Assembly (NCBI GenBank): GCA_002269645.1
Contig: NIVC01001489.1
Span: 1-64,000 of the forward strand
Origin: Macrostomum lignano
Taxonomy: Eukaryota
Direction: 5' to 3'
DNA: 64,000 nucleotides
In this document: positions 3,264-62,790 of the stretch, piece after piece
Layout: each line of letters begins with the position of its first letter
Position numbering within the stretch: the first letter of the stretch is position 1
Translations under genes and position numbers: made by a program
Notes under the pieces: model-generated
Told to the model about the DNA's origin: nothing
Seen by the model: only the letters and a program-made list of their open reading frames with translations
Database searches by the model: none

Positions 3264-3855
3264 CAGGCGCGTCGCCACCGGGGGGGACAGGGGGGACATG
3301 TTCCCCCCCCCCACAGTAAAAGCTATGGGGGGACATGCCATGCTTTGTCCCCCCCCCCAGCCGATCAGTTGCGACCCGTTGTGGTAATCAATAATTTTTC
3401 TTCAGGGCGCCAAAATATAGCGCCTTCGGCGCCAAAATGAGTGTCTGCGACGCTAAAATGAGTGCCTGCGACGCTAAAATGAGTGCCTGCGACGCCAAAA
3501 TGAGTGCCTTCGGCGCCAAAATGAGTGCCTGCAACGCTAAAATGAGGGCCTGTAACGCTAAAATGAGGGCCTGCGACGCTAAAATGAGTGTCTGCGGCGC
3601 TAAAATAAGTGTCTGCGACGCTAAAATGAGTGCCTGCGACGCTAAAATGAGTGCCTGCGACGCCAAAATGAGTGCCTTCGGCGCCAAAATGAGGGCCTGC
3701 GACGCTAAAATGAGTGTCTGCGGCGCTAAAATGAGTGCCTGCGGCGTTAAAAAAAGTGCCTGCGGCGCCAAAATTAGTGCCTGCGTCGCCAAAATGAGTA
3801 CATGTTGAATTCTTGGCTTTATCCCCCCACCATAAAATCCATGGCGACGCCCCTG
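3264..3855 (+). mobile_element. Complete MITE family A with an internal 21-bp tandem array
   Basis: TIRs are CAGGCGCGTCGCCA (3264-3277) and TGGCGACGCCCCTG (3842-3855), with one mismatch. CAG termini and a degenerate 8-bp flank (ttctcgtc / atcccgtc) suggest a hAT-type element. No ORF. Confidence 0.8.
3425..3800. repeat. 21-bp minisatellite (gcgacgctaaaatgagtgcct)n
   Basis: Direct tandem repetition. It explains the ACDAKMS and ILAPQAL ORFs. Confidence 0.95.
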
Positions 3856-5049
3856 ATCCCGTCCCTCTACTTGAGTAGGCCTATAGTCCTTGGAAATCTT
3901 GTGGTTTTTCTCGAATGGAATAAGCGAATTTATTTATTTCAGACGCCTAGTTTTTAGGTTACGATAGTATTCGAGTAGCTGTCATTTAAAAAGGGAACAT
4001 AATGCGCAGACGTACCGGCACTTTGGATCAAAGATGTACACGCACGTATTAAACAAAAATTATGATTTCTTAAACAAAAGTTTTACTCTCATTTTTTTAG
4101 CATGGGATTGCTCATATAGTAATTTGCTATTATTAACAAAGAATCATAAACAGACACTTCATATATATTAGAAGCCTTGAATTTCTAAACTGCGATAATT
4201 GCAATATTTCAATTTCAGATTAAGCGATCTTAAATTTGGCCCAAGCAGCAGGGAAAGCGAAAATTAAAAAAAAAATTATTCCTATGTTTTTTGCAAACTA
4301 GACGACATAATACTTGGACCATATAACAATGAATTGAATACTTTTAATTAAGTTTTGCTCTTACTAGAGGTCTGTTTTTGAATATAAAATGTTCCTACTG
4401 AATGTAATAATTTTTAATTATCTGTACATTAAAATATGTTTAATTTTGCTCATCTAATGTATTGTTTTTTTTCTACAAAATATTCTACTTATTACTATAT
4501 TGCACCCTATAAAATAATACCCTCTCTATTTTATAATTATTAGAATTATATCCCAAAAGGAAAATAAGCTCTAATCTTATAATACCATGCTTAGTAATGC
4601 TTTTACTTTAAATAACTAAGTATTATTCATTTTTTAAGTTGATATGCTTTTTAGTTTTTAAAAGTCTCTCCTTTCATTTAAAGAAACTCCAGTGTACAAA
4701 AGGTATTTATTTTTTTAAGATTTATAATATGTAAATTATATTTATTTCTCCTAGCTATCATAGTATAATATCTGACTTTATTGTCTAATTGTAATAGACA
4801 ATTGTGATTATAATTGTAAGGTTATTGTGATAACCTTAAGTTTTTAATAAGAGCAAATTGATCTGAATTTTAATTTTTATTGTTAAATTACTATAAAAGT
4901 TGAATTGGTATATGCTTTTATATTTAATCTTTATAGTAGTTATTTATGCCATAGCATTAATACTATAGCCTATAGGTCAATAGGAAATCAATTCTAAAGA
5001 CAAAATATCTTTTTTTCATAATTTTGATTGTAATTATGATCAAAACTAT

Positions 5050-5970
5050 CTATATTATATAATATCATTGATAGATTTCAGCTTTATCTAACTAAGCCTT
5101 CTTAGCATATATGCTTTGTATAGCCAATTGTATATAGCTAGGCCTAATGCAAATCTACCTCTGGTCTTGCAAAGTGACACCCTATCACTATTTCTATTTG
5201 TTATCCTGATTGACTATATCATGTAGCTGGCTCTGTGCAATAAAAACATCTTCAACTACCAACTCACCTCTGATAGCCTAAAGGCTGCCTTCTTCTGCTC
5301 GGCAGTTGAGATGGTGCTGACCTATAAGATAGAAGCTGTCCCTATGACTGCCACTCGTGAGGTGAGCTTAGAGGCTTGCCATCGTCACCTCCTGCGCAAT
5401 GCCATGGGCATCTAGTTCCCTGAGCATATGTGCAATGCTGAGCTAGTAGCCTGGACCTGCATGCTGCCCCTGGGTTGCACTTTGCAGAGGCAATGCCAGA
5501 TGTTGATCAGCCACTGCCTGTGGGCTAACACCCCTATTGCAGCCAAGGTCTGAACCGCGCCGGACGCCCCCCTTTCCTGCGCCAGACATCTACCCGTACC
5601 GCGCCAGGGCCAGTCCCCAGGATCAGTGATTTGGTTCAATTAGTCAGTCCTCCCCTCCCGCACCCCTCTCCCATGCCCCGCGCCACGCCGCCGCCACACG
5701 CCACGCCACGCGCGCGCCGCCGCGCCGCCGCGCCGCCGCTGCGCGCCGCGCCGCCGCCGCGCGCTGCGCCGCCGCCAGGCCAATCCGCGCCGGACGCCGT
5801 CCACGAAAATGGCCATTGGCTGCAATAGGGGCTAACACATGGGGCACCACTCTGGCTGACACTTTTTTCACTGACTTGCAGGCTCTGGGCCTTACCTCTC
5901 AGTCTGCAGCTAGGCTGGACTTAGCTGTTTTCTACCAATGGGTGCTTCGCTAACCTGCACTAGCATCCTT

Positions 5971-6002
<32 letters not shown>
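5050..6002 (+). mobile_element. Old, heavily mutated RTE-like LINE remnant
   Basis: 5166-5226 translates LQSDTLSLFLFVILIDYIM* (cf. LQGDTLAPFLFV). ~5285-5530 gives FCSAVEMVLTYKIEAVPMT...CHRHLLRNAMG..., matching the post-RT region of the 1442-3164 element. An (AAT)n tail lies at ~5973-6002. The 5' boundary is approximate. Confidence 0.7.
5532..5830. mobile_element. 299-bp GC-rich MITE (family B) with 8-bp TSD
   Basis: Perfect 15-bp TIR CCCTATTGCAGCCAA (5532-5546) / TTGGCTGCAATAGGG (5816-5830). Exact TSD GCTAACAC at 5524-5531 and 5831-5838. The subterminal motif ccgcgccggacgcc occurs twice. Confidence 0.9.
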
Positions 6003-6003
<1 letters not shown>

Positions 6004-6737: not shown

Positions 6738-7708
6738 AAAGCAAAAGAAGAAGTTCAGCAATCCGCAACATTTGCTGCGTGGTGTCCTGAAGCATGGAGA
6801 GTTGCTGCCGAAACCCTGTGTTGTCAGAATCTGCTTTGTCAGTGCCGATGGTCAAGGTAATGCCCTGGTTTCCATTGCAGTTTGATAGATCGCTAATTCC
6901 CATCTAATCCCTTTGATATGCCGCTAATCCCCACCTAATCCCTTTGATTTGCTGCTAATCCCCACCTAATCCCTTTGATATGCCGCTAATCCCCATCTAA
7001 TCCCTTTGATTTGCTGCTAATCCCCATCTAATCCCTTTGATATGCCGCTAATCCCCACCTAATCCCTTTGATATGCCGCTAATCCCCATCTAATCCCTTT
7101 GATATCCCGCTAATCCCAATCCTTCCGATCCGTTTGATGTGCCGCTAATCCTCTACGATTCACATTGCAGTATGTTTATTTGAAAGCAATTGTCAATGGC
7201 TTATCCATTCTTGTACACACTGCCTCTCAGACTCGGAGTTCGTCAGCCAAATGATCGCCTCCTGCCAATCAGAGCTCGCCGAATATTGCCGTCGACGAAG
7301 CTTTGGTCCTCCTCTCAATTTGACCTTGATTGACCTCAGCTCTGGAGTCGGTTGTTCAGAACTGGACGATCACAGTCTGGCAAGTGTTCGCCGCGACGAA
7401 CTTCGTCGATGCCTTCGACAGTCGCGAGGCCCGGCAATTTGCTGGGCGACCGTCGGTGGACCTGGAAATGAAGAGGCTGAAGCGTTCAGAGCGCCGCCAG
7501 AGTCCGTGCCCCAGTCTGTGCTGGACCAGCTGGCCCGGGTTATGAATGCCGGAGATGAGGACCGCCTGAGGCGCTGGTACCAGCTGGATGAGAATGCGCA
7601 GCCTGCCCAGTATTGCCTGCTGCCCGTGAGTGAGATTAGGAGCTGTTATAATTAGCTGCCTACATCAACTAATTAGCTGCCTACATCAACTAATTAGCTA
7701 CCTACATC

Positions 7709-7740
<32 letters not shown>

Positions 7741-7751
7741 GACTAACTAAT

Positions 7752-7796
<45 letters not shown>

Positions 7797-7811
7797 GACT
7801 AACTAACTAAT

Positions 7812-7860
<49 letters not shown>

Positions 7861-7865
7861 GACTG

Positions 7866-7904
<39 letters not shown>

Positions 7905-7937
7905 GACTGACTGACTAACTAACTAACTGACTAACTG

Positions 7938-7972
<35 letters not shown>

Positions 7973-8001
7973 GACTGACTGACTGACTAACTAACTAACT
8001 G

Positions 8002-8036
<35 letters not shown>

Positions 8037-11000
8037 GACTGACTGACTGACTAACTAACTAACTGACTAACTAACTAACTAACTAACTAACTAGACTTAT
8101 TCTAACTGAACTTTAACTAACTGACTATTCCTCCCAGGTGAGCAGTCGCCACCCAGAATATCTCAGCGCTGACGTACGCGCAGCCGCCGCAGCCGCAGCT
8201 GCCTGGCGCTCCGAGGCGGCCGCCCTGCTGACTTCAATGCGAGCCGCCGCTGCCGCCATCGCCGGTCTGGGCGGCCTGCCAACCGCCTGGGCCACCGGGG
8301 CGGCCTTTGAAGACGCCGACAGGGATGCTCTGGAATCCTTTGACGACTCCGCCCTGCTCCGGTGCTCCACAGCCGAGGAGTTTCTGTTCTCGGCTCGCAG
8401 CCGCATCGAATTTGCCCAGCAGCAAGCGGTTCAGCCGGTAGTGCCGCCGCTGCTGATTGAAGCCGCTGCCGGTCATCTTCGGGTTCGTCGACGTCTGCTG
8501 CGGATGGCGGCAATCAGCTGCGAGGATGCCGATCAGGATGGCGCCGATTTTGACAAAGATTTTAGCTCCTGGCGCCAAGCGCGCCGCGCCGTGATGGAAT
8601 ATGCCGCGTCTGCTGGCGCCTCCACTGCGCCGCTGCTGGTTGTCGGTCCGCCTGGCGTCGGTAAATCGACGCTACTAGCTGACGCATCCACTCGGCTGAC
8701 CATGGTAGCGAAGGACTCGACGGTGGTGCTGTTTCGACTGGCTGGCAGCGACTCCGAGCTCGGCTGCTGCGGCGGCATCGTGAGGAGCCTCCTGAGGCAG
8801 CTGCGAGGCGTCTACGGCGATGAGGGCTTTGCGGGGGAGGACGAGTGAGTCACTCCCTGACTGGGATCCAACTGCCTTCATATATCCTGATCCCAAATCC
8901 CTGGGGTTCTGATCCCCAATCCTGGGATTCTGATCCTCAATCATGAGATTCTGATCCCCATCATGGGATTCTGATCCTCAATCATGAGATTCTGATCCCC
9001 ATCATGGGATTCTGATCCTCAATCATGGGATTCTGATCCCCAATCATGGGATTCTGATCCCCAATCATGGGATTCTGATCCCCAATCATGGGATTCCGAT
9101 CCCCAATCATGGGATTCTGATCCTCAATCATGGGATTCAGATCCTCAATCATGGGATTCTGGTCCTCAATCATGAGATTCTGATCCCAATCATGAGATTC
9201 TGGTCCCCAATCATGGGATTCTGATCCTCAATCATGGGATTCTGATCCCCATCATGGGATTCTGATCCTCAATCATGGGATTCTGATCCTCAATCATGGG
9301 ATTCTGATCCTCAATCATGGGATTCTGATCCCAAATCATGGGATTCTGATCCCCAATCATGGGATTCTGATCCTCAATCATGGGATTCTGATCCCCAATC
9401 ATGGGATTCTGATCCCCATCATGGGATTCTGATCCCCAATCATAGGATTTAATCCCCAATCTTGTGATTCTGATCCTCAATCATGTGATTCTGATCCTGA
9501 ATCATGGGATTCTGATCCCTAATAATTGGATTTAATCCCCAATCATGGAATTTCAATCCTCAATCGTGGGATCCTGATCCCCAATCATGGGATTATGATC
9601 CCTAATCATGGGATTCTGATTCACAATCATGATTTTAGTCCCCAATCATGGGATTTTAATCCTCAATCATGGGATTCTTTCTAATCCTCAATCATGAGAT
9701 TCTGATCCCCAATCATGAGATTCTGGTCCCCAATCATGGGATTTTAATCCTCAATCATGGGATTCTTATCCTCAATCATGGGATCCTGGTCATGAATCAT
9801 GGCATTCAATCCCCATTTTGAATTCTGATCCTCAATAATTAAATTCCAATCTCCAATCAGGATCGGCTCCCAATTTTCGAGGATTCAGATCCTAGGGTTT
9901 CTATCTCTTGTCCCAGGAGTAATTCAGACAAACTTGACCCCCCCCCCGCAGAATCAAAGAACTGTCGGACTCTCAGCTGTTCTCTCACCTTGCGGCCTGT
10001 CTGGGCCGCCTGAGCAGTCTACACCTGCTACCTCACGGCCACCGGCTGGGGATCTTTGTCGCCGGACTCGATCGTCTAGAAGGCTCTTTGTCCAGCCTAG
10101 CCTGGCTGCCCGCGCAGCTGCCGTCGAATGTTCGAATCGTTTCGAGCTGCTCAGCTGAAACCGCATCGGACTGGGGCTGCAGCTGCCAGTCGGTTCTGCG
10201 CCTGACCGATCCGACTTCGAAATTGGAGATCGAGAGGACGGCCGTTCGACTTCTGGCGTCGGGATGGCGCGGGCGCCGGCTGCGAGCTGGGCAGCTTGCC
10301 GTGGCTCTGAGTAGCGTCCTTGGCAACGAGGTCGAGTCCTCTTGCAGATGCGGAGTGGCTCTGAGACTGCGGCTGGCGATGGCTGGGGCGTCGGCCTGGC
10401 GCTCGGATTTCAAAGTCGGACGAAGCGAGCTGGAAGACGGGAGCTGTCCGGTTCGCCGGCTGATGGAGCGGGCGTTGGAGAGGCTGGAGAGGCGGTTCGG
10501 CAGCCGGCCTGTTGGCGAGGCGCTGGCGGCCGTCACCTACTTGACGGAGGTGGGTGCCTGGAGTTCATTTTTGAGCAGTTTTGCATTAAAAATTGTTAAG
10601 AGTTTCTTTGTTGTGGAAGTCTTTGTGTGCACGAAAAATTTGCTGGGGAGGTTGTCGTGAGCTTCACACACATGAGGGCCAGTCCCCCAAGGGGATCGCC
10701 ATCATAAACCCAAAAAATTACAACTCCGAAAGCACTTCCCATCATAAACCCGAAATATCACAAACCCGAAATATCACAAACCCGAAATATCACAAACCCG
10801 AAATATCACAAACCCGAAATATCACAAACCCGAAATATCACAAACCCGAAATATTGTATCACAAACCCGAAATATCACAAACCCGAAATATCACAAACCC
10901 GAAATATCACAAACCCGAACTATCATAAACCCGAAATATCACAAACCCGAAATATTGTATCACAACCCGAAATATTGTATCACAAACCCGAACTATCACA

Positions 11001-14000
11001 AACCCGAACTATCACAAACCCGAACTATCACAAACCCGAACTATCACAAACCCGAAATATCACAAACCCGAAATATCACAAACCCGAAATATCACAAACC
11101 CGAAATATTGTATCACAAACCCGAACTATCACAAACCCGAACTATCACAAACCCGAACTATCACAAACCCGAACTATCACAAACCCGAAATATCACAAAC
11201 CCGAAATATCACAAACCCGAAATATCACAAACCCGAAATATTGTATCACAAACCCGAACTATCACAAACCCGAACTATCACAAACCCGAACTATCACAAA
11301 CCCGAACTATCACAAACCCGAACTATCACAAACCCGAAATATCACAAACCCGAAATATCACAAACCCGAAATATCACAAACCCGAAATATCACAAACCCG
11401 AAATATCACAAACCCGAAATATTGTATCACAACCCGAAATATTGTATCACAAACCCGAACTATCACAAACCCGAACTATCACAAACCCGAACTATCACAA
11501 ACCCGAACTATCACAAACCCGAACTATCATAAACCCGAATTATCACAAACCCGAAATATCACAAACCCGAAATATTGTATCACAAACCCGAAATATCACA
11601 AACCCGAAATATCACAAACCCGAAATATCACAAACCCAAAATATTGTATCACAAACCCGAAATATTGTATCACAAACCCGAAATATCACAAACCCAAAAT
11701 ATCACAAACCCGAAATATCACAAACCCGAAATGTTGGATCACAAACCCGAAATATCACAAACCCGAAATATTGTATCACAACCCGAAATATTGTATCACA
11801 AACCCGAAATATCACAAACCTGAAATATCACAAACCCGAACTATCATAAACCCGAATTATCACAAACCCGAAATATCACAAACCCGAAATATCACAAACC
11901 CGAAATATCACAAACCCGAAATATCACAAACCCGAAATATTGTATCACAAACCCGAACTATCACAAACCCGAACTATCACAAACCCGAAATATCACAAAC
12001 CCGAAATATCACAAACCCGAAATATTGTATCACAAACCCGAACTATCACAAACCCGAAATATCACAAACCCGAAATATCACAAACCCGAAATATCACAAA
12101 CCCGAAATATTGTATCACAACCCGAAATATTGTATCACAAACCCGAACTATCACAAACCCGAACTATCACAAACCCGAACTATCACAAACCCGAACTATC
12201 ATAAACCCGAACTATCACAAACCCGAAATATCACAAACCCGAAATATCACAAACCCGAAATATTGTATCACAAACCCGAAATATCACAAACCCGAAATAT
12301 CACAAACCCGAAATATCACAAACCCGAAATATCACAAACCCGAAATATCACAAACCCAAAATATTGTATCACAAACCCGAAATATTGTATCACAAACCCG
12401 AAATATCACAAACCCAAAATATCACAAACCCGAAATATCACAAACCCGAAATATTGTATCACAAACCGAAATATTGTATCACAAACCCGAACTATCACAA
12501 ACCCGAACTATCACAAACCCGAACTATCACAAACCCGAACTATCACAAACCCGAAATATCACAAACCCGAAATATCACAAACCCGAAATATCACAAACCC
12601 GAAATATTGTATCACAACCCGAAATATTGTATCACAAACCCGAACTATCACAAACCCGAACTATCACAAACCCGAACTATCACAAACCCGAACTATCATA
12701 AACCCGAACTATCACAAACCCGAAATATCACAAACCCGAAATATCACAAACCCGAAATATTGTATCACAAACCCGAAATATCACAAACCCGAAATATCAC
12801 AAACCCGAAATATCACAAACCCGAAATATCACAAACCCGAAATATTGTATCACAAACCCGAACTATCACAAACCCGAACTATCACAAACCCGAAATATCA
12901 CAAACCCGAAATATCACAAACCCGTAATATTGTATCACAACCCGAAATATTGTATCACAAACCCGAACTATCACAAACCCGAACTATCACAAACCCGAAC
13001 TATCACAAACCCGAAATATCACAAACCCGAAATATCACAAACCCGAAATATCACAAACCCGAAATATTGTATCACAACCCGAAATATTGTATCACAAACC
13101 CGAACTATCACAAACCCGAAATATCACAAACCCGAAATATCACAAACCCGTAATATTGTATCACAACCCGAAATATTGTATCACAAACCCGAACTATCAC
13201 AAACCCGAACTATCACAAACCCGAACTATCACAAACCCGAAATATCACAAACCCGAAATATCACAAACCCGAAATATCACAAACCCGAAATATCACAAAC
13301 CCGAAATATTGTATCACAACCCGAAATATTGTATCACAAACCCGAACTATCACAAACCCGAACTATCACAAACCCGAACTATCACAAACCCGAACTATCA
13401 CAAACCCGAACTATCATAAACCCGAGTTATCACAAACCCGAAATATCACAAACCCGAAATATCACAAACCCGAAATATTGTATCACAAACCCGAAATATC
13501 ACAAACCCGAAATATCACAAACCCGAAATATTGTATCACAAACCCGAAATATTGTATCACAAACCCGAACTATCACAAACCCGAACTATCACAAACCCGA
13601 AATATCACAAACCCGAAATATCACAAACCCGAGATATCACAAACCCGAAATATTGTATCACAAACCCGAACTATCACAAACCCGAACTATCACAAACCCG
13701 AACTATCACAAACCCGAAATATCACAAACCCGAAATATCACAAACCCGAAATATCACAAACCCGAAATATTGTATCACAAACCCGAACTATCACAAACCC
13801 GAACTATCACAAACCCGAACTATCACAAACCCGAACTATCATAAACCCGAGTTATCACAAACCCGAAATATCATAAACCCGAAATATCACAAACCCGAAA
13901 TATCACAAACCCGAAATATTGTATCACAAACCCGAAATATCACAAACCCGAAATATCACAAACCCGAAATATTGTATCACAAACCCGAAATATTGTATCA

Positions 14001-17000
14001 CAAACCCGAACTATCACAAACCCGAACTATCACAAACCCGAACTATCACAAACCCGAAATATCACAAACCCGAAATATCACAAACCCGAAATATCACAAA
14101 CCCGAAATATTGTATCACAAACCCGAACTATCACAAACCCGAACTATCACAAACCCGAACTATCACAAACCCGAACTATCATAAACCCGAGTTATCACAA
14201 ACCCGAAATATCATAAACCCGAAATATCACAAACCCGAAATATCACAAACCCGAAATATTGTATCACAAACCCGAAATATCACAAACCCGAAATATCACA
14301 AACCCGAAATATTGTATCACAAACCCGAAATATTGTATCACAAACCCGAAATATCACAAACCCGAAATATCACAAACCCGAAATATTGTATCACAAACCC
14401 GAAATATTGTATCACAAACCCGAACTATCACAAACCCGAACTATCACAAACCCGAAATATCACAAACCCGAAATATCACAAACCCGAGATATCACAAACC
14501 CGAAATATTGTATCACAAACCCGAACTTTCACAAACCCGAACTATCACAAACCCGAACTATCACAAACCCGAAATATCACAAACCCGAAATATCACAAAC
14601 CCGAAATATCACAAACCCGAAATATCACAAACCCGAAATATTGTATCACAAACCCGAACTATCACAAACCCGAACTATCACAAACCCGAACTATCACAAA
14701 CCCGAACTATCACAAACCCGAACTATCACAAACCCGAACTATCACAAACCCGAACTATCACAAACCCGAAATATCACAAACCCGAAATATCACAAACCCG
14801 AAATATTGTATCACAAACCCGAACTATCACAAACCCGAAATATCACAAACCCGAAATATCACAAACCCGAAATATCACAAACCCAAAATATTGTATCACA
14901 AACCCGAAATATTGTATCACAAACCCGAAATATTGTATCACAAACCCGAAATATTGTATCACAAACCCGAAATATCACAAACCCGAAATATTGTATCACA
15001 AACCCGAAATATCACAAACCCAAACTATCACAAACCCGAACTATCACAAACCCGAACTATCATAAACCCGAATTATCACAAACCCGAAATATCACAAACC
15101 CGAAATATCACAAACCCGAAATATCACAAACCCGAAATATTGTATCACAAACCCGAAATATTGTATCACAAACCCGAACTATCACAAACCCGAACTATCA
15201 CAAACCCGAAATATCACAAACCCGAAATATCACAAACCCGTAATATTGTATCACAACCCGAAATATTGTATCACAAACCCGAACTATCACAAACCCGAAC
15301 TATCACAAACCCGAACTATCACAAACCCGAAATATCACAAACCCGAAATATCACAAACCCGAAATATCACAAACCCGAAATATCACAAACCCGAAATATT
15401 GTATCACAACCCGAAATATTGTATCACAAACCCGAACTATCACAAACCCGAACTATCACAAACCCGAACTATCACAAACCCGAACTATCACAAACCCGAA
15501 CTATCATAAACCCGAGTTATCACAAACCCGAAATATCACAAACCCGAAATATCACAAACCCGAAATATTGTATCACAAACCCGAAATATCACAAACCCGA
15601 AATATCACAAACCCGAAATATTGTATCACAAACCCGAAATATTGTATCACAAACCCGAACTATCACAAACCCGAACTATCACAAACCCGAAATATCACAA
15701 ACCCGAAATATCACAAACCCGAGATATCACAAACCCGAAATATTGTATCACAAACCCGAACTATCACAAACCCGAACTATCACAAACCCGAACTATCACA
15801 AACCCGAAATATCACAAACCCGAAATATCACAAACCCGAAATATCACAAACCCGAAATATTGTATCACAAACCCGAACTATCACAAACCCGAACTATCAC
15901 AAACCCGAACTATCACAAACCCGAAATATCACAAACCCGAAATATCACAAACCCGAGATATCACAAACCCGAAATATTGTATCACAAACCCGAACTATCA
16001 CAAACCCGAACTATCACAAACCCGAACTATCACAAACCCGAAATATCACAAACCCGAAATATCACAAACCCGAAATATCACAAACCCGAAATATCACAAA
16101 CCCGAAATATTGTATCACAACCCGAAATATTGTATCACAAACCCGAACTATCACAAACCCGAACTATCACAAACCCGAACTATCACAAACCCGAACTATC
16201 ACAAACCCGAACTATCATAAACCCGAGTTATCACAAACCCGAAATATCACAAACCCGAAATATCACAAACCCGAAATATTGTATCACAAACCCGAAATAT
16301 CACAAACCCGAAATATCACAAACCCGAAATATCACAAACCCGAAATATTGTATCACAAACCCGAAATATTGTATCACAAACCCGAACTATCACAAACCCG
16401 AACTATCACAAACCCGAAATATCACAAACCCGAAATATCACAAACCCGAGATATCACAAACCCGAAATATTGTATCACAAACCCGAACTATCACAAACCC
16501 GAACTATCACAAACCCGAACTATCACAAACCCGAAATATCACAAACCCGAAATATCACAAACCCGAAATATCACAAACCCGAAATATTGTATCACAAACC
16601 CGAAATATTGTATCACAAACCCGAACTATCACAAACCCGAACTATCACAAACCCGAAATATCACAAACCCGAAATATCACAAACCCGAGATATCACAAAC
16701 CCGAAATATTGTATCACAAACCCGAACTATCACAAACCCGAACTATCACAAACCCGAAATATCACAAACCCGAAATATCACAAACCCGAAATATCACAAA
16801 CCCGAAATATCACAAACCCGAAATATTGTATCACAAACCCGAACTATCACAAACCCGAACTATCACAAACCCGAACTATCACAAACCCGAACTATCACAA
16901 ACCCGAACTATCATAAACCCGAGTTATCACAAACCCGAAATATCACAAACCCGAAATATCACAAACCCGAAATATCACAAACCCGAAATATTGTATCACA

Positions 17001-34620: not shown

Positions 34621-34646
34621 CCGACACTGTCCGTCCCGCAGCCGTA

Positions 34647-48637: not shown

Positions 48638-48796
48638 ACGTATTTATAAATGGCTACTAGAATTCAATATGCTAGTTCTATGGACTCGTTTTTAAGCTGA
48701 CGGCCAATCAATCAACCTTCCAAGACACTTAAAATGTACTAAAAAATTCCTGACAACAAGGAAGCAAAGAGCTGTAAAAAACCTATACGACAGCAC

Positions 48797-49131: not shown

Positions 49132-49221
49132 TTCCTCGCGATGAAATATCCTCACCATTGCCCTGCCCAAGCCTTTCACCCATATTTAAATTTACTGAAA
49201 ACAATCTTTCTCCCATCGAAG

Positions 49222-50572: not shown

Positions 50573-52393
50573 AGCAACTGTGTAATTAGAACTACCCTGG
50601 CGCAACGCCTTCGCCCTGGCAAAAGTTATCGTGCACAGGCTTCTGAAACAGCCGCGGACTGTACAAAATTAGAATCAGAATTAGGCTAACATTAAAAATC
50701 AGCGACTTTGTGATTTCTCTGTCCTTGATTGCTACTTGAGTTTTGTTTTCGATTTGCAAGTTCGGTAGATTTTTTCAATATTTTTATCGTCAATTTTGTA
50801 CTATTTTATCTTCATAGGAGCTCGTAAACATATGCGCAATAAATGCTATCCAGCTACTCACTTTGAAGCCTGGCAGTAGTATTCAAAGTATTTTAAGGAT
50901 TTTTTTGCGTCTGATATTTTATAATTTTTCTTATTCCCGACAAGACTATTTAACAAAGCAAAGTGCACGCATCCGATCCAACCTTTTTTCTGCGGCAAAC
51001 TCAATTCCTTTTGTTACTGCCTGCTTCTGCACCGCCGATTGCATGCTCGAAAATAAGAGTAGAAAGCTTTTATACACTTATCGAAATAGGGCAAGAAAGC
51101 AGGATAATTGCTGTCTCTCTTGTACGCTTTCAAGCAATTTTTGACCTTCAAATTAATTTCTTAAAGATTGAGTTAAAGCGATACGACTACGCGATCAATG
51201 TGTGCACATAACTTTGTTATTGACAGAATTGCAAACTATAGTGTCTACTGAGACAGCAGTAGTCAGGGAATTTGTTTTAGGCAAGGACTACTAAAGTAGA
51301 AGACGCACACTCGAAATCTATGGAAAATGTTTTGAAAGCCATTTTTCATTGAAAAATACACAACGGAGATAGAAGGTTAGCATTTTTTCAGCACAAAATT
51401 GTTACTGTTTTCGATAGGAGGCGGACCCAGCGTTCATCGTTTAATATGTTGTGCCTTTATTACAGCTCTATTGATATTCATAAAGCTTTTTGTTCAGAAA
51501 ATTGGGATTCTATGTTACTTTTTATTCTACATGTACATACAATTGCAAATATCCTGTGCCTAAAAACCATTAAAATGACACGGCTCGGCTCGATCATTGG
51601 TTTTATGAATCTATTTCGTCATTTTTTGGCTGACTGTGTAACAATATGTGTCACAGAGATGATAAAATGGATTCAGAAAAACAAAGATTCAAGCTGTGCG
51701 ATGCGATTTTTGCTCACAGGGAATGTACCTAGAATAAAAAATTAACATTTAATCCTAAAGTTCTGAACGAAATGCTTTATAAATATGATGAGGACGCACT
51801 TTTTTCCAAACTTCACGCTCCAAACTTACTAGCCTACTAACAGCAGGCTATGGGCATTTTTCTCTTTATGTAAATTGCCTAGAATCCATACTAGTAGAAC
51901 TTTTGTAGTTATATGATTTTGCCATACTTGTAGTTATAATAACATAGGTGCGGCTTTTGGGTCATAAATCATCGCCTTCGAGCTGGTCTGACAGCCACCC
52001 CCGCCTCACTCAGTGCTGAGACTGGCGCCAGATGGTCTGAGAGGATGCGGGCGGTAGCTTATTTCTCATCATTTTGACAGGCCATCAAGATTTATGAGGT
52101 CAGGGCCTATTGTTCGTGTTCACTCAAGCGTGTGACAGCTTTGACAGCTATGCGTTTTACCCCTAAAAGTACGTTGGGATTAGCGATTAGCGATTTCTCT
52201 TCAATATCTTCACTTTCTATTTAATAAGAGCTTTCTGATGTATATTTTTTCATTAATTTTTATAATTCCTACGCGAAAGGTCATAAATCATTATGTAGCG
52301 ATTTTGAGTGATTTATGACCGCACCTGTCGTATTTTAATGGCCCCGAGGGAACTGATAGGATATTCTGGTCACGTGAGTTTGGGTGGCAACAA

Positions 52394-52501: not shown

Positions 52502-53745
52502 CCGGTGTTTTTGGCCCGCTCGGACTCAACCTCCTGCTCCGCCTCCTGGGACTTTGGCCTAACATAGACCTCCCGGAGATCGACCGTCGTCTCTTGATTC
52601 CCGGATCGCGACTCCCCCCATCATCATCAAGGACGAATCCCCTCGGTCGTCAGCAGCGAACATCAAGATTAAGAACATCACCTGCTAGCTATCTGCGAAG
52701 GTTGTGACATCAGCATTATCCCGGGCCTACAGCTGCGAAGCACTAAGCCGATTCGGTCACTGTGGATTACCTGGTCTCCGGCTGTTGAGTTTCTGATTGG
52801 TTGGGTGAGAGGCTACCTAGACTTGCTTGATTGGGTGATTCCTTATCTGTCCCCTATTTCAATAGCTGGAATAGGCGCACACTTTTGCTCACTTTGTTCA
52901 ACAGGGCTGTTATTGAGCCAGAAATCATTAATAATACTGTTAGTAGTCCGAAGCCTCAATTTAATCTGAGGTGTGAAGTGTTCGAGTTAGCCTATCATCA
53001 GCTCTACGAGAGGCTTGTTGGCGCGTTGAAGGCCAAAAGTACAATTCCTCGTATTTAGCAATGTAATAATACATGTAGCTACCCCATAGTCTCGCCACTG
53101 CAAGAATCCCCTGCACGAGTCCCCTCTGTACCTGCATGGCCAATGCGATCAAGTCCCTGCAGTGTCCCTTATCATCGGCTATGACTTCGAGATTGACAGC
53201 AAAAAGACACTAGTTGGCAGGTAAGTGCTAAGCCCCCTCTAGTCGGAAGCCCGATTTCGAAAGTTCCGGTTTGGTGAGCCAGAACGCACGGGCTGGTGGC
53301 AGCGGGTTAGTTAATCTGCGGATTAGCTGATCTCTACCTTCAAAATTCTCTGCTTGTCTCTCGCTGTCCCTCTCTTAGCTATAGGACCTAGACTGCTCGC
53401 CACAAGATCAAGCTACCATGGGGCTGACCATCTGACAGGAGTGGGGGGCCAGGACTCTAATGGATTCATTTCTGAGGCCCGAAGGCTTCCACAAAGGAGC
53501 CGAAAAGGCCGAAACCCATCAAATATCAATAGAGCTGTCTGATATAAGAAAGGCACAATAAATCAAAAGATGAACATTGGTTCTGCCTCCTATCGAAAGC
53601 AATAACAATTTTTGTGCTGAAACAACGAAGACTTCCTATCTCCGTAGTGTATTTTCGGCGAAAAGTGGCCTTCAAAACTATTTCCATGAAACGTTAGTGT
53701 CTTCGCAGCTGTATATACGTTGTGTTGCTTTAGTTGTCCTTGTGT

Positions 53746-55326
53746 TTATGTGTAGCTGCCGCCGCTGCCAGGTCTTCCACTGTTCAGGCCTGTGCTGCCG
53801 AGAATCACGGTCGCCTCGCTTGCTGGCTCCGCAATTTCGGGACTTACTGAGCCTCCACCCCGGTCTCCATGGCGACTGAACGACGCAACGATTTGATCGA
53901 TGCTGCGACCTTTGGTCTCCGGCATGCGCAGGAACAGGAGGGCAAGGAACGCGGCCGTCAGGACGGTGAACGGCACGAACACCAGCGAGCCGAGGCCGTC
54001 CAGTAGCACGGGGAACAACATACCGACGGCGAAGTTCGCCAGCCAGTTCACCAGCACGCCGACAGCGTTAGCCGCTGAGCGAGAGTCCTGCGGGAACATC
54101 TCCGACATCATCATCCAGGGGATCGAGCCGGGACCGATGGCGAAGAACACCACGACGAGCAGCGCGGATGCGATGCTCCCCCCAGCGAGGCCGGCTGGCA
54201 CCGCGCCGTTGACTTTCTGCTGCTGGCCGACGCTGAACAGCACAGTGAAGAGAGCGGAGGCCACCGTGATGCCCGCCAGGCCCGCCAGGTGAAGAGTCCG
54301 CCGGCCAGCCCGGTCCATGAGCGGCACGGACACGAGCGTCATCACCACCATGATGGCACCGACCGCGATAGTGGCCAGCTGTGCCGCCGACTCTGATGCT
54401 CCGACGCCCTGGAACAGATCAGCTGAGTAGTAGAAGATGACGTTGATGCCTGACCACTGCTGGGACAGGTGCAGCACAATCCCCACAATTAGAGGCCGCC
54501 ACTGGGCAGCGAGGCGCGAGCAGCCCTGCCGCTGCTCCTGACCGGTTTGGCCGTCCAACTCGGAGCGAATCTCCACCAACTCCTCGTCGATGGACTTGTC
54601 CTCGCTGTCTCCTTTGTCGACGCCGCGCAGCTGGCACAGAGCCGAGCGAGCTGCAGCTTCGTCGTGTCTGGTGAGCAGCAGGTGCCGCGGCGTCTCCAGG
54701 CAGGCCGGCAGGCAGGCGAGCTGCAAGACGCTTGGCAGGCCGGCAATGGCGAACAAAATCGGCCAGAGCTGCGGCCCGCCCAGTGCCTGCTGGATGCTGA
54801 GCGCTTGCGACAGCAGCAGGCCGGTCACCACGCCGAGCTGTTTCAGCACGCCGATGCCGCCACGCAGCTGTCTGGGCGCGATCTCAGCCAGGTAGATCGG
54901 CACCAGCCCCGTGTACAGAGCGCTGCAGAAGCCGATCAGCAGCCGGCCGATGATCAGCATCTCGAAACTTCCAGCCGGTTTCGCCACCGACATCAGGAGA
55001 GCGGCCACCACGCCAACGCCAGAGTTGACGAGCATGCCGTTCCTGCGGCCCAGCCGCTCGGCCCAGTAGCCGCTGACCAGAGCGCCGATCATGCCGCCGA
55101 CGGCGAACATCGACACGACCACGGAGAACAGCACGTCGGCTGTGTACGCGGTTAGCTGGACACCGTAGTGAGCCGCTGTGGACTCGTTGATCAGGCGGAC
55201 GATGCTCGCCTTTGGATTGTTGATCACCCCGGTGCTCCAGCCGAAGCAGACAGCGCCGAGAAAGGCGGAGAAGCAGGAGAACGCGAGGAAGGCTGTGACG
55301 CCTGAGGAGCTGCGACGTTGAGTCAT
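53746..55326 (-). CDS. Facilitated glucose transporter (SLC2A/GLUT class I-like), 526 aa, intronless
   Basis: Uninterrupted ORF with sugar-porter motifs: GWSTGVIN, ERLGRR, VPIYLAEIAP..LRG, ETPR, QQWSGINVIFYY, DRAGRR, GPGSIPW, PETKG. Confidence 0.95.
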   Translation of the reverse strand: MTQRRSSSGVTAFLAFSCFSAFLGAVCFGWSTGVINNPKASIVRLINESTAAHYGVQLTAYTADVLFSVVVSMFAVGGMIGALVSGYWAERLGRRNGMLVNSGVGVVAALLMSVAKPAGSFEMLIIGRLLIGFCSALYTGLVPIYLAEIAPRQLRGGIGVLKQLGVVTGLLLSQALSIQQALGGPQLWPILFAIAGLPSVLQLACLPACLETPRHLLLTRHDEAAARSALCQLRGVDKGDSEDKSIDEELVEIRSELDGQTGQEQRQGCSRLAAQWRPLIVGIVLHLSQQWSGINVIFYYSADLFQGVGASESAAQLATIAVGAIMVVMTLVSVPLMDRAGRRTLHLAGLAGITVASALFTVLFSVGQQQKVNGAVPAGLAGGSIASALLVVVFFAIGPGSIPWMMMSEMFPQDSRSAANAVGVLVNWLANFAVGMLFPVLLDGLGSLVFVPFTVLTAAFLALLFLRMPETKGRSIDQIVASFSRHGDRGGGSVSPEIAEPASEATVILGSTGLNSGRPGSGGSYT

Positions 55327-56518: not shown

Positions 56519-56979
56519 TCAACATGAGTTGCCAGTTGCACAAAGCCAGATCTGTAAAATTTGCCAACTCTGGACAAAAACTCTATGACCCCATTTTCCA
56601 ACTCTTCGTTGGAGAAATTTTTTGCTGATCAAAAACTTGGTTAGGGATAAAAGATAATCGTAAATGGGAACTGTGTGGGCTGTGAGTTGGATGCAGCAAA
56701 ACCTCACAGCCCGGCTGCAGCAGCTGCTAAACTGCCAAGTTTAAATTTGCAAAACTTATTCATTCAATTGGCCGCAAATGTTTGCATCAGATTCTGAAGT
56801 TTCCTAGGATAGCTCGTATGATAAAACACCGCCACAGTTATGAGCTATGAAAATGAGAAAGATAAATATAGCATTTTGCAGCCCATTTGGGCCTACACGC
56901 ATTGAATTTAATCCAAGATACGTTTGCCAATGCAACGGAGCTTTTGTCTATGGTAGCAAGGCTGGCGCAGCGGCAGTTA

Positions 56980-57490
56980 ATTTGGTCCAACAAGCATCAA
57001 TTTGGTCCAACAAGCGTCAATTTGGTCCAACAAGCATCAATTTGGTCCAACAAGCATCAATTTGGTCCAACAAGCATCAATTTGGTCCAACAAGCATCAA
57101 TTTGGTCCAACAAGCATCAATTTGGTCCAACAAGCGTCAATTTGGTCCAACAAGCATCAATTTGGTCCAACAAGCATCAATTTGGTCCAACAAGCATCAA
57201 TTTGGTCCAACAAGCATCAATTTGGTCCAACAAGCATCAATTTGGTCCAACAAGCGTCAATTTGGTCCAACAAGCATCGATTTGGTCCAACAAGCATCAA
57301 TTTGGTCCAACAAGCATCAATTTGGTCCAACAAGCATCAATTTGGTCCAACAAGCGTCAATTTGGTCCAACAAGCATCGATTTGGTCCAACAAGCATCAA
57401 TTTGGTCCAACAAGCATCAATTTGGTCCAACAAGCATCAATTTGGTCCAACAAGCATCAATTTGGTCCAACAAGCATCAATTTGGTCCAT
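56980..57490. repeat. 20-bp array (aatttggtccaacaagcatc) in the left TIR, ~25 copies
   Basis: Direct reading. Confidence 0.97.
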
Positions 57491-57951
57491 AGCTTCATTT
57501 GCTACTGTTGCGGAGGATCAAGATCAGCCGCAGAATTGTGGACCATATGCTAGGCGTCGAACTCGAACGAACGCCATTATTGGCTTGTGCTCAAAGCACT
57601 CAACAGAGGTGAACACCCAAAGGACATTGCAAGGTTGCTGAATGTAAAAGAAAATGTTGTTTACAGCATTCATCAGCGCGTTGAAACCAATGCCGGCATA
57701 GGTCGCCTGCGAAAAGGTAGCAATCGCCAAACTGCTACTCGATGCGATTGAGACGAACCCTTTGTGTTGAAGTTGCAGAAAATGCAGCAGAAGTTGAAGG
57801 AAAAGTTCGAGTTGGTTCTCAGATTTCGACTACCAGCAGAGCTCTGGAAAAGCGACTGAAAATTGTTGGTAGAGACGCTGACATTCCAGCGGTACGCAAC
57901 AACCTGCAGACGGTTGCGAGAAGGTAAGAGCTTGCCGAATGGCTCACGAGT

Positions 57952-58283
57952 GTTTGGACCAAATTGATGCTTGTTGGACCAAATTGATGCTTGTTGGACC
58001 AAATTGATGCTTGTTGGACCAAATTGATGCTTGTTGGACCAAATCGATGCTTGTTGGACCAAATTGATGCTTGTTTGACCAAATTGATGCTTGTTGGACC
58101 AAATTGATGCTTGTTGGACCAAATTGATGCTTGTTGGACCAAATTGATGCTTGTTGGACCAAATTGATGCTTGTTGGACCAAATTGACGCTTGTTGGACC
58201 AAATTGATGCTTGTTGGACCAAATTGATGCTTGTTGGACCAAATTGATGCTTGTTGGACCAAATTGATGCTTGTTGGACCAAA
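57952..58283. repeat. Inverted 20-bp array in the right TIR, ~16 copies
   Basis: Reverse complement of the 56980-57490 unit. Confidence 0.97.
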
Positions 58284-58638
58284 TTAACTGCCGCTGTGCC
58301 AGCCTTGCTACCATAGACAAAAGCTCCATTACATTGTCAAACGCATTTTGGATTAAATTCAATGCGCGTAGGCCCAAATGGGCTACAAAAAGCTATATTA
58401 GTATAGACTTCCTGAAAGCGATGTTGATCGATGCATACGAGTATAATATAGGATTCAATACTTGGTTTTGAGTGCTTAAATGTCTAGTTGATAAAAGTTG
58501 ATAAAAAGCCAACCAAGTTTAGAATTCAGTGCTTTTCCACGCCTATTTCTATAGTCTATGACAATGTCTATGACATAGTTTACGACAATGAGCTATAAAA
58601 CTGTAGAATGTCAAGAACTGAATACAATACGATAAAAA

Positions 58639-59148
58639 CTAAATACAAACGCAAACAGAATTGAAAGCTAATTTTAAACGGTCCAGCTTTTGAGTTATGT
58701 AGCATGCAAAAATTAGATAAAATTGGTGACCTTCGATGCACAAACCGAACAGACGAGAGCAATGAAGCTCCCACGCTGCCGCCTTGTCTGCTGTGATAGT
58801 TTCAGCTACGGCCGCGCGGGCTTCTCGTTCCATTAGCATGAATCTCCAGTCTTCCAGCATCACGTCTTCAGGAGGAGCAGCCTCCTTCTCCATCAATTCC
58901 GTCTCGACCAAGCGGCATTTAATTTTAGCCTTCAGAGCGCTGTTGGCCAGCTCGGACGGATTCAGAAATGGAGCGTAGGTTGGCAGGATGCGAACTGAGA
59001 TGCGCTGCTGCAGCTGGTGAATCGCAACCCCGCGATGAAAGTGTGGCCCGTCCATCACGATCAGCCACCACCCATCAGGATCGCGTTCAGAGCACAGCTC
59101 AATCGCGTTCAGGTTAACTGAAGTTGGGAATTGTTGAGTTAGTGTCAA
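58639..59148 (-). mobile_element. IS630/Tc1-like transposase C-terminal catalytic fragment
   Basis: LIVMDGPHFH...ILPTYAPFLNPSE..NSALKAKIK corresponds to the second D and the E of a DDE_3-type triad. Confidence 0.8.
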
Positions 59149-60100: not shown

Positions 60101-60190
60101 TGAAGACGTTCGGGCCGCGGTGCAGAACCGCACACCACTCGAATTTTTGAAGCAACTCATTCAAGTTCAAGCTCAAACAACTCAGTCAGA

Positions 60191-60534
60191 ATGGCGCAGT
60201 TCCAGAAGGGTGACATGTCCCCCGAGCTGAAGCCGGACGTCCTCGCCCTGATCAACGAGATCTGCGCCGAGTACAAGGACGACGATGGCATCGCCAGCAA
60301 CCTGAAGAAGAGGCTGGACAGCAAGTTCACCCCCACCTGGCAGGTGACCGTTGGCCGCAACTACGCTAGGTGAGAGTTTCACGCAGTTGCTTCTTCTGAA
60401 ATTTTATCAGCTATAAATAAACTCAACTTCTCATTGCCGCCTGACTTTCCAGCTACGTGACGCACGAGAAGAACACCTTCGGCTACTTCCAGAACGGCCC
60501 CTTTGCCATCCTGGTGTACAAGGCCGGCCTGTAA
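60191..60534 (+). CDS. Dynein light chain (LC8-family fold), divergent, 86 aa
   Basis: Exons 60191-60369 and 60453-60534: ...IASNLKKRLDSKFTPTWQVTVGRNYASYVTHEKNTFGYFQNGPFAILVYKAG, compared with LC8 WHCIVGRNFGSYVTHE. Confidence 0.92.
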
Positions 60535-61027
60535 GCGACTGTCGCGTAACAGTCTTCTCGACAGTGACTTCCAACCAACATATTCTTAATCAATATTTTA
60601 ATTACTAAGCTAGCAAGTAATAAATTAAGAAAATAGTGTTCTTCCACGCGATATTCGCCCGGAATATTATAAATATTCCATTGCTCACTCGACTTAACTC
60701 ATTGAGCCATCGACTTAAAAGTTTTGCGTTGCTGTTTCGAACTTCGGCAATGCGTACCATCGAATAGGCTATGCTTTTTTACATTTTAAACTAAAATACA
60801 AGCTGTGCGTTCCACAACAGAAAAAAGACCAAGAGCTCACGGTTCTAAGTATTAGTTAAAATATATATTAGGCATATTGTCTTTTATTTTTACTACCTAT
60901 TTGACTTACTGAAATTTCAAGCTTTGATTGGCGACCAACTTTGAACAAATGCGACACTTATTCTTCTGTGCTACCACATGCTTCTACTGTATTGAAATCG
61001 ACAGAATTCCAAATAAGAAAAGTGTGA

Positions 61028-61740
61028 ACAGACACTAGCGAGTGCTGCAAAAATATAGACACTACTAGCGAGTGTTGCAAGACCATAGACACTAGCGAGT
61101 GTTGCAAGACCGTAGACACTAGCGAGTGTTGCAAGACCGTAGACACTAGCGAGTGTTGCAAGACCGTAGACACTAGCGAGTGTTGCAAGACCATAGACAC
61201 TAGCGAGTGTTGAAAAATATAGACACTAGCGAGTGTTGCAAGACCATAGACACTAGCGAGTGTTGCAAGACCATAGACACTAGTGAGTGTTGCAAGACCA
61301 TAGACACTAGTGAGTGTTGCAACACTAGCGACTGTTGCAAGACCATAGACACTAGCGACTGTTGCAAGACCATAGACACTAGTGAGTGTTGCAAGATGAT
61401 AGACACTAGTGAGTGTTGCAAGACCATAGACACTAGCGACTGTTGCAAGACCATAGACACTAGTGAGCTTTGCAAGACCATAGACACTAGTGAGTGTTGC
61501 AAGACCATAGACACTAGTGAGTGTTGCAAGACCATAGACACTAGTGAGTGTTGCAAGACCATAGACACTAGTGAGTGTTGCAAGACCATAGACACTAGTG
61601 AGTGTTGCAAGATCATAGACACTAGTGAGTGTTGCAAGACCATAGACACTAGTGAGTGTTGCAAGACCATAGACACTAGTGAGTGTTGCAAGATCATAGA
61701 CACTAGTGAGTGTTGCAAGACCATAGATACGAGCAAGTGT
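61028..61740. repeat. 27-bp minisatellite (gagtgttgcaagaccatagacactagt)
   Basis: Tandem copies; they explain the LQHSLVSMV and IDTSECCKT ORFs. Confidence 0.95.
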
Positions 61741-61744
61741 TGCA

Positions 61745-62790
61745 AAGCGGCATTTAATTTGATCCAACAAGCATCAATTTGGTCCATAGCAGCTCCATAT
61801 TTTCACCCCTAGACTTTAATGTAGATATATCTGACGCAAGCAGTGAGGACAGAAGCAATGATTCATTTGAAACTGCTGAGCAGGATCAGTAGTGGAATCG
61901 TAGACCATATACTCTAGACTGTCCAACGAACGCCATGAGCTTGTGATCAAAGCATCGGACGGAGTTGAACACCTAAAGGACATTGCAAGGTTGCTGAGTG
62001 TCAAAGAAAAGACGGTTTAAAGAATCTGTCAGCGTGTTGAAACCACTGGAAGAAGAGATCGTCTGCGGAGGGACAGAAATCGCCAAAACAAGTTACGGAA
62101 GCCTCAGGTCCAATTGCTACTCGATGCAATTGAGACAAACCCTTTGTTGACGTTGCAGAAAGTGCAGCCAAAGTTGAAAGAACAGTTCTATTTGTTTTTC
62201 AGCATTTCGACCATCAGCAGAGCTCTGGAAAAGCGACTGATAACACTGAAAATTCTTGGTAGAGACGCTGACCTTCCAGAAGTACGCTCGTACATGTACG
62301 CAACAGCCCGGACGAGTTTTCTGGACGAGACTGGATTTAACATTTTGACTCGAAGAACGCAAAGTCCTGGTCGTCGAGGTCAGCAAGTGAATGTACTGCA
62401 AGCGGTTTTACCGACCATTTGACTCGCCTGCCACAAAGTTGCGAACTAGACTAGGACCGGTGATTTGTTTTATCAGTGCATCAGTAAACTGCTGCAATCT
62501 CTACTCGAAGTTCATGGACTGGATGCCCAACAGATGCGCGTCATTTTGGATGATGCGCGGTTTCATGCACGGAGCCTGCATTTCGGAAGTACATCAGGAC
62601 AGGATCCAAGCTCATCACATTGCAACCATAATCCCCGTTTCTAAATCCTGTCAAGGCTGTCCATTCTTGCCTGAAGGCTGTAATCAAACAGGAGCTCAGT
62701 GACCCGGCCAACCAACTAGAGCTTGATCAGCCGCCTCCTAAACACCACCCTTGGCCAATGGAGAGTACATAATGCTTCACAGCTGCCATC
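61745..62790 (+). mobile_element. Decayed IS630/Tc1-like transposon, same family as 56867-58396
   Basis: It starts with gcggcatttaatttgatccaacaagcatcaatttggtccatagc (TIR remnant). Transposase remnants follow: LLDAIETNPLL, ISTISRALEKRL, FLDETGFN, ILDDARFH, P*SPFLNP, with stops and frameshifts. Confidence 0.85.

Follow-up and report, generated by a model that had tools for sequence, protein, structure and literature searches.

Tandem arrays fill 42.5% of bases 1-64000 of contig NIVC01001489.1 (assembly GCA_002269645.1) of the flatworm Macrostomum lignano, and the question that this locus raises is where such arrays come from. The contig belongs to accession NIVC00000000, the Mlig_3_7 assembly, and the Mlig_3_7 genome paper puts the share of simple and tandem repeats at 15% of the genome, describes large recent duplications in the sequenced line, and notes that an unusually high repeat load hampers assembly. 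Within this 64-kb stretch, referred to below as the window, Tandem Repeats Finder (TRF) delineated 21 separate arrays totaling 27.2 kb. A sequence-only reading of the same DNA had traced four arrays, built of 16-, 20-, 21- and 27-nt units, to DNA transposons; it took transposon ends to be a main source of the arrays and suggested that they might have grown through repair of breaks made by transposase. All four structures are present where that reading had placed them (TRF). We regard it as probable, at roughly 0.7, that short direct repeats in the ends of DNA transposons seeded these arrays and that slippage or unequal exchange expanded them, the window being, as part of the same explanation, a graveyard that holds a hAT-like MITE (miniature inverted-repeat transposable element), a second small MITE, a foldback element and two Tc1-like copies, all of them dead.

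The 20-mer Arrays of a Tc1-like Element

Two copies of one Tc1-like family, E3 and its sister, lie within 4 kb of each other. Their parts are as follows.

56869-58395, plus strand: E3, 1527 bp, a Tc1-like element flanked by TA and with an internal deletion
56869-56978, plus strand: left outer inverted end of E3, 110 nt of unique sequence with the direct repeat (DR) motifs DR1 GCAGCCCATTTGGGCC, DR2 GCATTGAATTTAATCC and DR3 GCAGTTAATTTGGTCC; mirrored at 58286-58395
56979-57489, plus strand: left 20-mer array of E3, 25.5 copies
57490-57953, plus strand: core of E3, 464 nt, a remnant of a DDE_3 transposase that is frameshifted and encodes only the helix-turn-helix part
57954-58285, minus strand: right 20-mer array of E3, 16.6 copies
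61732-62869, plus strand: sister of E3, with the inner left inverted end (61732-61790) carrying 1.5 copies of the 20-mer and a degenerate transposase at about 61890-62750

E3 is flanked by TA at 56867-56868 and 58396-58397, its outer ends are about 92% alike, and its core is 82% identical to the sister over 57566-57897. The 20-mer consists of AACAA followed by GCATCAATTTGGTCC, and because it is nearly one whole DR motif, the seed of the arrays would be an old tandem pair of the family end motif GCAGTYAATTTRGTCC, probably, by analogy with better known elements, a binding site for the transposase. A variant with G recurs every 5-6 units in the left array. It is the amplification of the 20-mer that gave E3 its foldback-like shape.

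The sister retains a near-full transposase gene that is broken by stops, frameshifts and deletions, and its conceptual translation matches Pfam DDE_3 (E = 2e-8) and HTH_32. Its right end is lost in the window through a deletion that reduced 337 nt to 23 nt (62869-62893). The sugar transporter (a 526-aa open reading frame (ORF) at 53746-55326, minus strand, with identical coordinates on the NCBI contig) has two close paralogs, and the contigs that carry them, L004 and L005, are paralogous to window 43.5-64 kb in reverse orientation. In both the right end of the sister is intact (L004 3703-3845, L005 2768-2910): it is a full copy of the E3 outer end, finishing ...GCAGTTAATTTGGTCCAACAAGCATCAATTTGGTCCATAGC, is preceded by TA in L004, and holds exactly 1.5 20-mer units with the same ATAGC boundary as the left array of E3. 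The left end shows the same 1.5 units in the window, L004 and L005. The proposal of the sequence-only reading that the 20-mer grew within Tc1-like ends is thus well supported, with 25.5 and 16.6 units in E3 against 1.5 at both ends of the sister and the motif pair present in a distant relative, and the copies of the family do not carry similar numbers of the unit.

A large protein collection yielded just two relatives of the sister transposase (42% and 37% identity), each from a short metagenome contig. In the closer of the two, the intact P0001, the catalytic glutamate is the 34th residue after the second aspartate by our own count, a Tc1-like spacing. The relative with 37% protein identity (L002) has the same tip, TATAGCATTTTT, followed by DR1, DR2 and DR3, and a further DR-like motif lies 21 nt after DR3, an array being absent from that end. 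E3, the sister and L002 share three DR motifs in conserved order, and E3 and the sister show the marks of Tc1/mariner elements, namely a TA duplication, a helix-turn-helix plus DDE transposase and, in the relative, DD34E-like spacing. Downstream of the L002 transposase gene, at the contig edge (1484-1561), are two exact copies of a repeat, 41 nt apart, which hints that the other end may also carry tandem repeats. No intact transposase of the family occurs among the annotated M. lignano proteins, and a metagenome scan for the family tip motif found nothing. A search for other array-bearing copies with the ORF that spans the E3 array gave no matches, such ORFs not being annotated.

A different DDE_3 transposase remnant (58639-59148, minus strand; Pfam E = 1.4e-7) lies 240 nt from the right end of E3; it is present in L005 and cut short in L004. 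In place of the E3 and transposase fragment of the window, L004 shows an unrelated stretch of 1.43 kb (7681-9110), and this replacement ruled out L004 as a clean empty site for E3. The replacement sequence includes a 43-nt repeat (8230-8951) in 16.8 copies at 100% identity, an array that must be very young.

The Foldback Element and Its 16-mer Array

The largest of the four arrays forms one arm of a foldback element.

10684-10692: left copy of the foldback target duplication, CCCCCAAGG; right copy at 18995-19003
10693-18994, plus strand: foldback element of 8302 bp, without coding capacity
10741-18873, plus strand: left arm, a 16-mer array of 479 units by unit parsing and 477 copies by TRF, with three main variants
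18903-18991, minus strand: right arm, 5 diverged units
43320-43381, plus strand: uninterrupted copy of repeat R2, an empty site for the foldback, reading ATGAGGGCC-GA-CCCCCAAGG once, then TGTACACCCTGTGT within 4 nt

The two arms are separated by a loop of 28 nt (18875-18902), and the ORFs of the element are translations of the repeat only. A stretch of at least 9 nt common to both flanks occurred in just 41 of 20,000 random flank pairs, a control for the CCCCCAAGG duplication. The R2 copy provides the comparison: TGTACACCCTGTGT corresponds to the right flank of the foldback at 19027-19072 (85% over 46 nt), and because CCCCCAAGG is there only once, the foldback is a 9-bp-duplicating insertion with tips GGATCGCCATCA... 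and ...TGATGCCC. A target duplication offset by 7 nt was considered and ruled out by the same comparison, which makes GGATCGC and CCC the element's own tips.

At the start of the left arm, three units plus a spacer form a mirror image of the right end (about 80 nt, 84%), and with 479 units facing 5, one arm must have changed size enormously after the inverted structure had formed. Among the left-arm units, 175 are ATCACAAACCCGAAAT, 152 are ATCACAAACCCGAACT, and 94 are 20- or 21-mers of the two commonest ATTGT-extended types. The array shows higher-order periodicity at about 117 and about 1423 nt, which is what unequal exchange yields. Together, the 9-bp duplication, the paralogous empty site within the window and the disparity of the arms uphold the suggestion that the 16-mer array grew from a sub-repeat of the foldback. 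The element resembles foldback (FB) elements in its sub-repeat arms, short loop, absence of coding capacity and 9-bp duplication; the window contains no autonomous partner for it.

Near the loop is a perfect 32-nt inverted repeat (18843-18874 and 18959-18990): the right tip is mirrored exactly by the final two units of the left array, whereas its match to the true left tip is only 84%. Recent conversion between the arms could account for this perfect mirror, as could a second, partial insertion. The foldback occupies an intron-like gap in an NTPase-like gene, and a search with a 512-aa exon of this gene, aimed at paralogs of the foldback and of the MITE described below, gave no matches, the gene not being annotated.

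Arrays inside Two MITEs

Two small non-autonomous elements near the left of the window also enclose arrays.

1175-1365, plus strand: truncated sister of MITE-A, comprising the left end, the left ~180 nt in common with MITE-A and about 2 degenerate 21-mer units
3256-3263: left copy of the MITE-A target duplication, TTCTCGTC; right copy ATCCCGTC at 3856-3863
3264-3855, plus strand: MITE-A, 592 bp, non-autonomous and hAT-like, with ends CAGGCGCGTCGCC and GGCGACGCCCCTG, delimited by sequence, alignment and empty-site comparison with repeat R1
3422-3799, plus strand: 21-mer array in MITE-A, 18.0 copies (TRF, repeat family D1 and unit map)
5532-5830, no strand assigned: small MITE of 299 bp, bounded by 15-nt inverted ends (CCCTATTGCAGCCAA) and an 8-bp target duplication (GCTAACAC), both without mismatch

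The inverted ends of MITE-A are 13-14 nt long and read CAGGSGCGTCGCC; its 8-bp target duplication now matches at 6 of 8 positions. The element interrupts a dispersed repeat, R1, other copies of which lie at 739-972, 50023-50212, 50482-50541, 51352-51491 and 53543-53694. Uninterrupted R1 copies read GTTTCTCGTCC-TACTTGAGT, and the MITE-A locus reads GTTTCTCGTC[MITE-A]ATCCCGTCCCTCTACTTGAGT; because R1 copies elsewhere are uninterrupted at the 8-bp duplication, MITE-A is a genuine insertion. Its ends start with CAGGG, fitting the hAT consensus; the hAT assignment of MITE-A and of the 5532-5830 unit is based only on the length of the duplication, which fits.

Within the 21-mer array a block of 8 units (168 nt) has been duplicated, which points to growth in situ. 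The homology of the truncated sister breaks off at about 1365, within a repeat unit and at the start of an inverted R1 copy, and because the sister is cut off within the repeat region, its low count is uninformative about the ancestral number. Proto-units of GGCGCCAAAA are present both in the pre-array sequence of MITE-A and in the sister, and on this weaker ground the 21-mer monomer appears to be native to MITE-A. The sequence-only reading had rested this case on the contrast between about 18 copies and one or two; MITE-A is indeed a hAT-like insertion with 18 copies, but the count in its truncated sister proves nothing.

Window 739-3880 is a nested pile-up, in which the R1 copy at 739-972 is followed by the truncated MITE-A sister and then by the inverted R1 copy. 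The latter (1366-1439, 3166-3263 and 3857 to about 3880) is split by MITE-A and by a reverse-transcriptase fragment (1440-3165) that is GC-rich, matches Pfam RVT_1 and has a (TAT)n tail at its end.

The scan of arrays for flanking inverted repeats showed that the small MITE encloses a GC-rich (CGC)n-type array at 5678-5776. This is a fifth case of an array inside a bounded unit and was absent from the four described previously.

The 27-mer Array beside the Sister

The fourth array of the sequence-only reading adjoins the sister of E3.

61030-61745, plus strand: 27-mer array, 26.8 copies, overlapping the inverted end of the sister by 14 nt

The array has 26.8 copies in the window and 26.7 and 29.7 in the paralogous contigs, and because it is present in all three, it predates their duplication. 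Homology to the inverted end of the sister starts at AGCAAG (61732), 14 nt inside the last 27-mer unit, and this unit is a hybrid that follows the inverted end at AGCAAG and the array at TGTTGCAA. Upstream of 61732 the 27-mer shows no direct similarity to the inverted end (an equal score was reached by 1488 of 2000 shuffles), and an origin of the 27-mer from that end in direct orientation was ruled out as not significant in shuffles. The reverse complement of the 27-mer does match the adjoining segment of the inverted end, with a 10-nt exact run, TGTCTATGGT (10 of 1000 shuffles), and an extended score that was reached by 15 of 2000 shuffles. That the array runs into the inverted end of the sister is therefore confirmed, but its origin from that end is suggestive and unproven, the direct match being confined to 14 nt. 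We consider a rearranged piece of the sister end a plausible source of the 27-mer, with about an even chance of being the right one.

Census of the Arrays and Their Gene Context

In a scan of all window arrays, flanking inverted ends and target duplications bounded units around 5 of the 21. These units hold 34% of the array bases, nearly all within the foldback. For 15 of the 21 the window scans found no flanking inverted ends or target duplications, although decayed old ends would escape such scans. The claim that DNA-transposon ends are the main source of the arrays is accordingly unsupported here. These counts give for the window the classification of arrays that the sequence-only reading had proposed genome-wide. 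Each of the four monomers (16-, 20-, 21- and 27-mer) is confined to its own element within the 64-kb window and 42 kb of paralogous contigs, so the monomers do not lie mostly outside transposable elements over this range. Over the same range the arrays are minisatellites inside or beside elements, with no sign that the monomers form dispersed satellites.

Large arrays without a detectable transposon context include a 7.8-kb array of a 23-mer (TTTAGAATCGCCCTTAGACTGCA, 346 copies) at 26789-34621 and a (TTCCA)n-based array at 23985-24895 whose higher-order unit is 70 nt; no inverted ends or target duplications could be detected around either. A 1.6-kb 20-mer array (41142-42775) lies wholly in the first intron of a PH-domain gene, an annotated 208-aa protein that we rebuilt from exons 40967-41018, 43077-43195 and 43437-43892. 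The introns of an XPG-N/XPG-I-like gene (34647-38247) are apparently filled by a 43-mer array (34966-35923) and a 12-mer array (36462-36839). Exact look-up of three splice models of this gene found none on record in the protein collection, and a profile-free search with its last exon retrieved only two M. lignano proteins, from an older annotation, at 81-83%.

The sequence-only reading had described the transposon-derived arrays as intronic, which holds for the foldback in its intron-like gap but not for the E3 and 27-mer arrays. In the public annotation E3 has the sugar transporter on one side and a dynein light-chain gene (60116-60534) on the other, and downstream of that second gene come the sister and the 27-mer array; all three are intergenic.

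Array Size at Shared Sites

The paralogous contigs allow arrays to be compared at the same locus. L005 carries E3 at the same insertion site (7618-8466), with flanks 98-99% identical to the window, and its array differs: the L005 copy has a single array of 31.9 almost pure 20-mer units and a core of 22 nt, which adjoins the opposite arm relative to the window. A flip between the inverted arrays and a subsequent deletion would give this arrangement, as would a misassembly. A 15-mer array with no transposon context behaves similarly, with 22.5 copies in the window (48796-49131), 23.5 in L004 (15839-16183) and 6.5 in L005 (16191-16287), between paralog flanks that are 97-99% identical. Because this transposon-free array changes as fast between paralogs, rapid array turnover appears to be general in this genome. 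The 15-mer array lies inside the span of an annotated 1357-aa leucine-rich repeat (Toll-like) gene, and its period is a multiple of three.

Origin of the Arrays

On the explanation that we favor, the dead DNA transposons would have carried short direct repeats inside their inverted ends, and these seeds would have been expanded by replication slippage together with unequal or intra-element recombination, after transposition or independently of it. In the Tc1-like family the seed would be the old tandem pair of GCAGTYAATTTRGTCC, with the sister representing the unexpanded state of 1.5 units per end and E3 the expansion to 25.5 and 16.6 units that would have produced its foldback shape. Ordinary slippage and unequal exchange would be enough, because the arrays lie well inside the tips, have changed at a fixed site and are matched in their rate of change by the transposon-free 15-mer.

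Several observations weigh against this explanation. That the Tc1-like arrays expanded rather than contracted rests on parsimony, with one sister and one distant relative; the rearranged E3 in L005 could be an assembly error in an inverted-repeat region; the sole comparator of MITE-A is truncated, and the master copy of its family may already have carried the array. The census is limited to the window and its paralogous contigs. The 27-mer is the most awkward case: in direct orientation it matches the inverted end at 10 of 14 positions against its consensus unit over 14 nt, beyond which it resembles the end in inverted orientation only, and the sequence upstream of the array has no likeness to the 80 outer nt missing from the left end of the sister (425 of 500 shuffles scored as high).

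These features of the 27-mer are also what would be expected if the array came first and an element inserted beside it, was truncated against it or picked it up, as has been proposed for a Xenopus Tc1/mariner MITE (PMC12628747). The outer 80 nt of the left end are missing in all three paralogs, as such a truncation would predict. On the other hand, a unit that is a hybrid of end and array, and the above-chance match in inverted orientation to the neighboring segment of the end, would not be expected of an unrelated array. For the 21-mer of MITE-A, the other array to which capture might apply, the GGCGCCAAAA proto-units in the pre-array sequence and in the sister speak for a native monomer. We regard capture or juxtaposition as possible, mainly for the 27-mer, and as unlikely for the arrays as a whole.

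Error-prone repair of transposase-made breaks at binding-site repeats, for example slipping gap repair after excision, would also tie array growth to transposon ends. Tandem repeats can grow or shrink through break repair, E3 belongs to the internal-deletion derivatives that interrupted gap repair after excision usually produces, and the amplified unit is the putative binding motif. The positions of the arrays fit this poorly, since in E3 they are about 110 nt, and in the foldback more than 40 nt, inward of the tips, away from the cuts of a cut-and-paste transposase. Moreover, E3 differs in array size between the window and L005 at one shared insertion site and must have changed without moving, the sole family transposase gene seen here is dead with no intact copy among annotated M. 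lignano proteins, and the 15-mer changes just as fast. The suggestion of the sequence-only reading that such repair was the source thus finds no support, slippage being sufficient, and we consider it rather unlikely.

A further alternative is contraction in place of birth, the ancestral ends having had long arrays, as in classical foldback elements, that the sister and the right arm of the foldback lost. Arrays can shrink fast, to judge from the 15-mer (22.5 copies in the window against 6.5 in L005), and in other animals there are foldback arms composed wholly of repeats. Against this, both ends of the sister stop at exactly 1.5 units with the same boundaries, the sister is the copy that retains a near-full transposase gene, and L002 shows the same two-motif arrangement without an array there; we judge general contraction to be quite improbable. 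Least probable is that the long arrays or their copy numbers are artefacts of long-read assembly across repeats, for despite the assembly difficulties reported in the genome paper and the odd single array of E3 in L005, three separately assembled paralogous contigs agree on the 27-mer (26.8, 26.7 and 29.7 copies) and on the 1.5-unit ends of the sister, and the arrays have internal variant patterns and higher-order periods.

Comparison with Known Systems

The most useful detail of this locus is that the amplified unit of a Tc1-like element is its own conserved end motif, with the precursor and the expanded state 4 kb apart. Simple and tandem repeats, the origin of which is unstudied, make the M. 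lignano genome difficult to assemble, and the window offers checkable examples of one route. Three paralogous copies show the pace of array change and amount to a natural experiment on growth rates and on the effect of extra binding sites on transposition. A broader proposition, that amplification of binding repeats can turn a Tc1-like element into a foldback with dozens of candidate sites and that it is a major feeder of the tandem-repeat fraction of this genome (15% genome-wide and 42.5% of the window), is speculative, and we hold it to be rather unlikely. If true, such arrays might act as transposase sinks or as hotspots of inversion and deletion, the latter being hinted at by the rearranged copy in L005.

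Among Tc1-like elements the closest parallels are those of the IR-DR type, which include Sleeping Beauty, other fish Tc1 elements, Tc3, Minos, Paris and Bari3. Their long inverted ends carry 2-3 transposase-binding direct repeats each, including an outer and an inner one, and they have a TA duplication and DD34E-type spacing. E3, the sister and L002 resemble them in having 3-4 DR motifs per end in conserved order, and binding to these motifs would be expected by analogy. E3 departs from the known IR-DR elements in carrying about 28 and about 19 DRs at its two ends, compared with 2-3.

FB elements make 9-bp target duplications, as does the foldback described here. Tetris and the classical FB elements are also like the elements of the window in being non-autonomous, in having tandem repeats in their inverted ends with copy numbers that vary between arms and between copies, and in the possibility of kilobase-sized arrays. 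The units differ, being 16 and 20 nt here as opposed to about 220 nt or the 10, 20 and 31 nt of FB, as does the host, a flatworm; and E3 is a derivative of a Tc1-like element, unlike the FB or P-like Tetris/FB elements. In Tetris of Drosophila the end repeats have expanded into satellite-like arrays (PMC4079207), and repeat-carrying MITEs of frogs and molluscs follow the same route (reviewed in PMC12628747); we found no such study for Macrostomum in the literature. Xenopus miDNA4 (Tc1/mariner) and Xstir, DTC84 of Donax trunculus and termite MITEs share with the elements described here a bounded short unit with a variable internal array, and slippage or microhomology models have been proposed for MITEs of this kind (PMC12628747). 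For miDNA4 the capture of an existing repeat was proposed, whereas in E3 the unit is the element's own conserved DR motif, with a 1.5-unit precursor at both ends of the sister. The window thus adds an example of a known route of satellite birth and leaves unchanged the general picture established in flies, frogs and molluscs.

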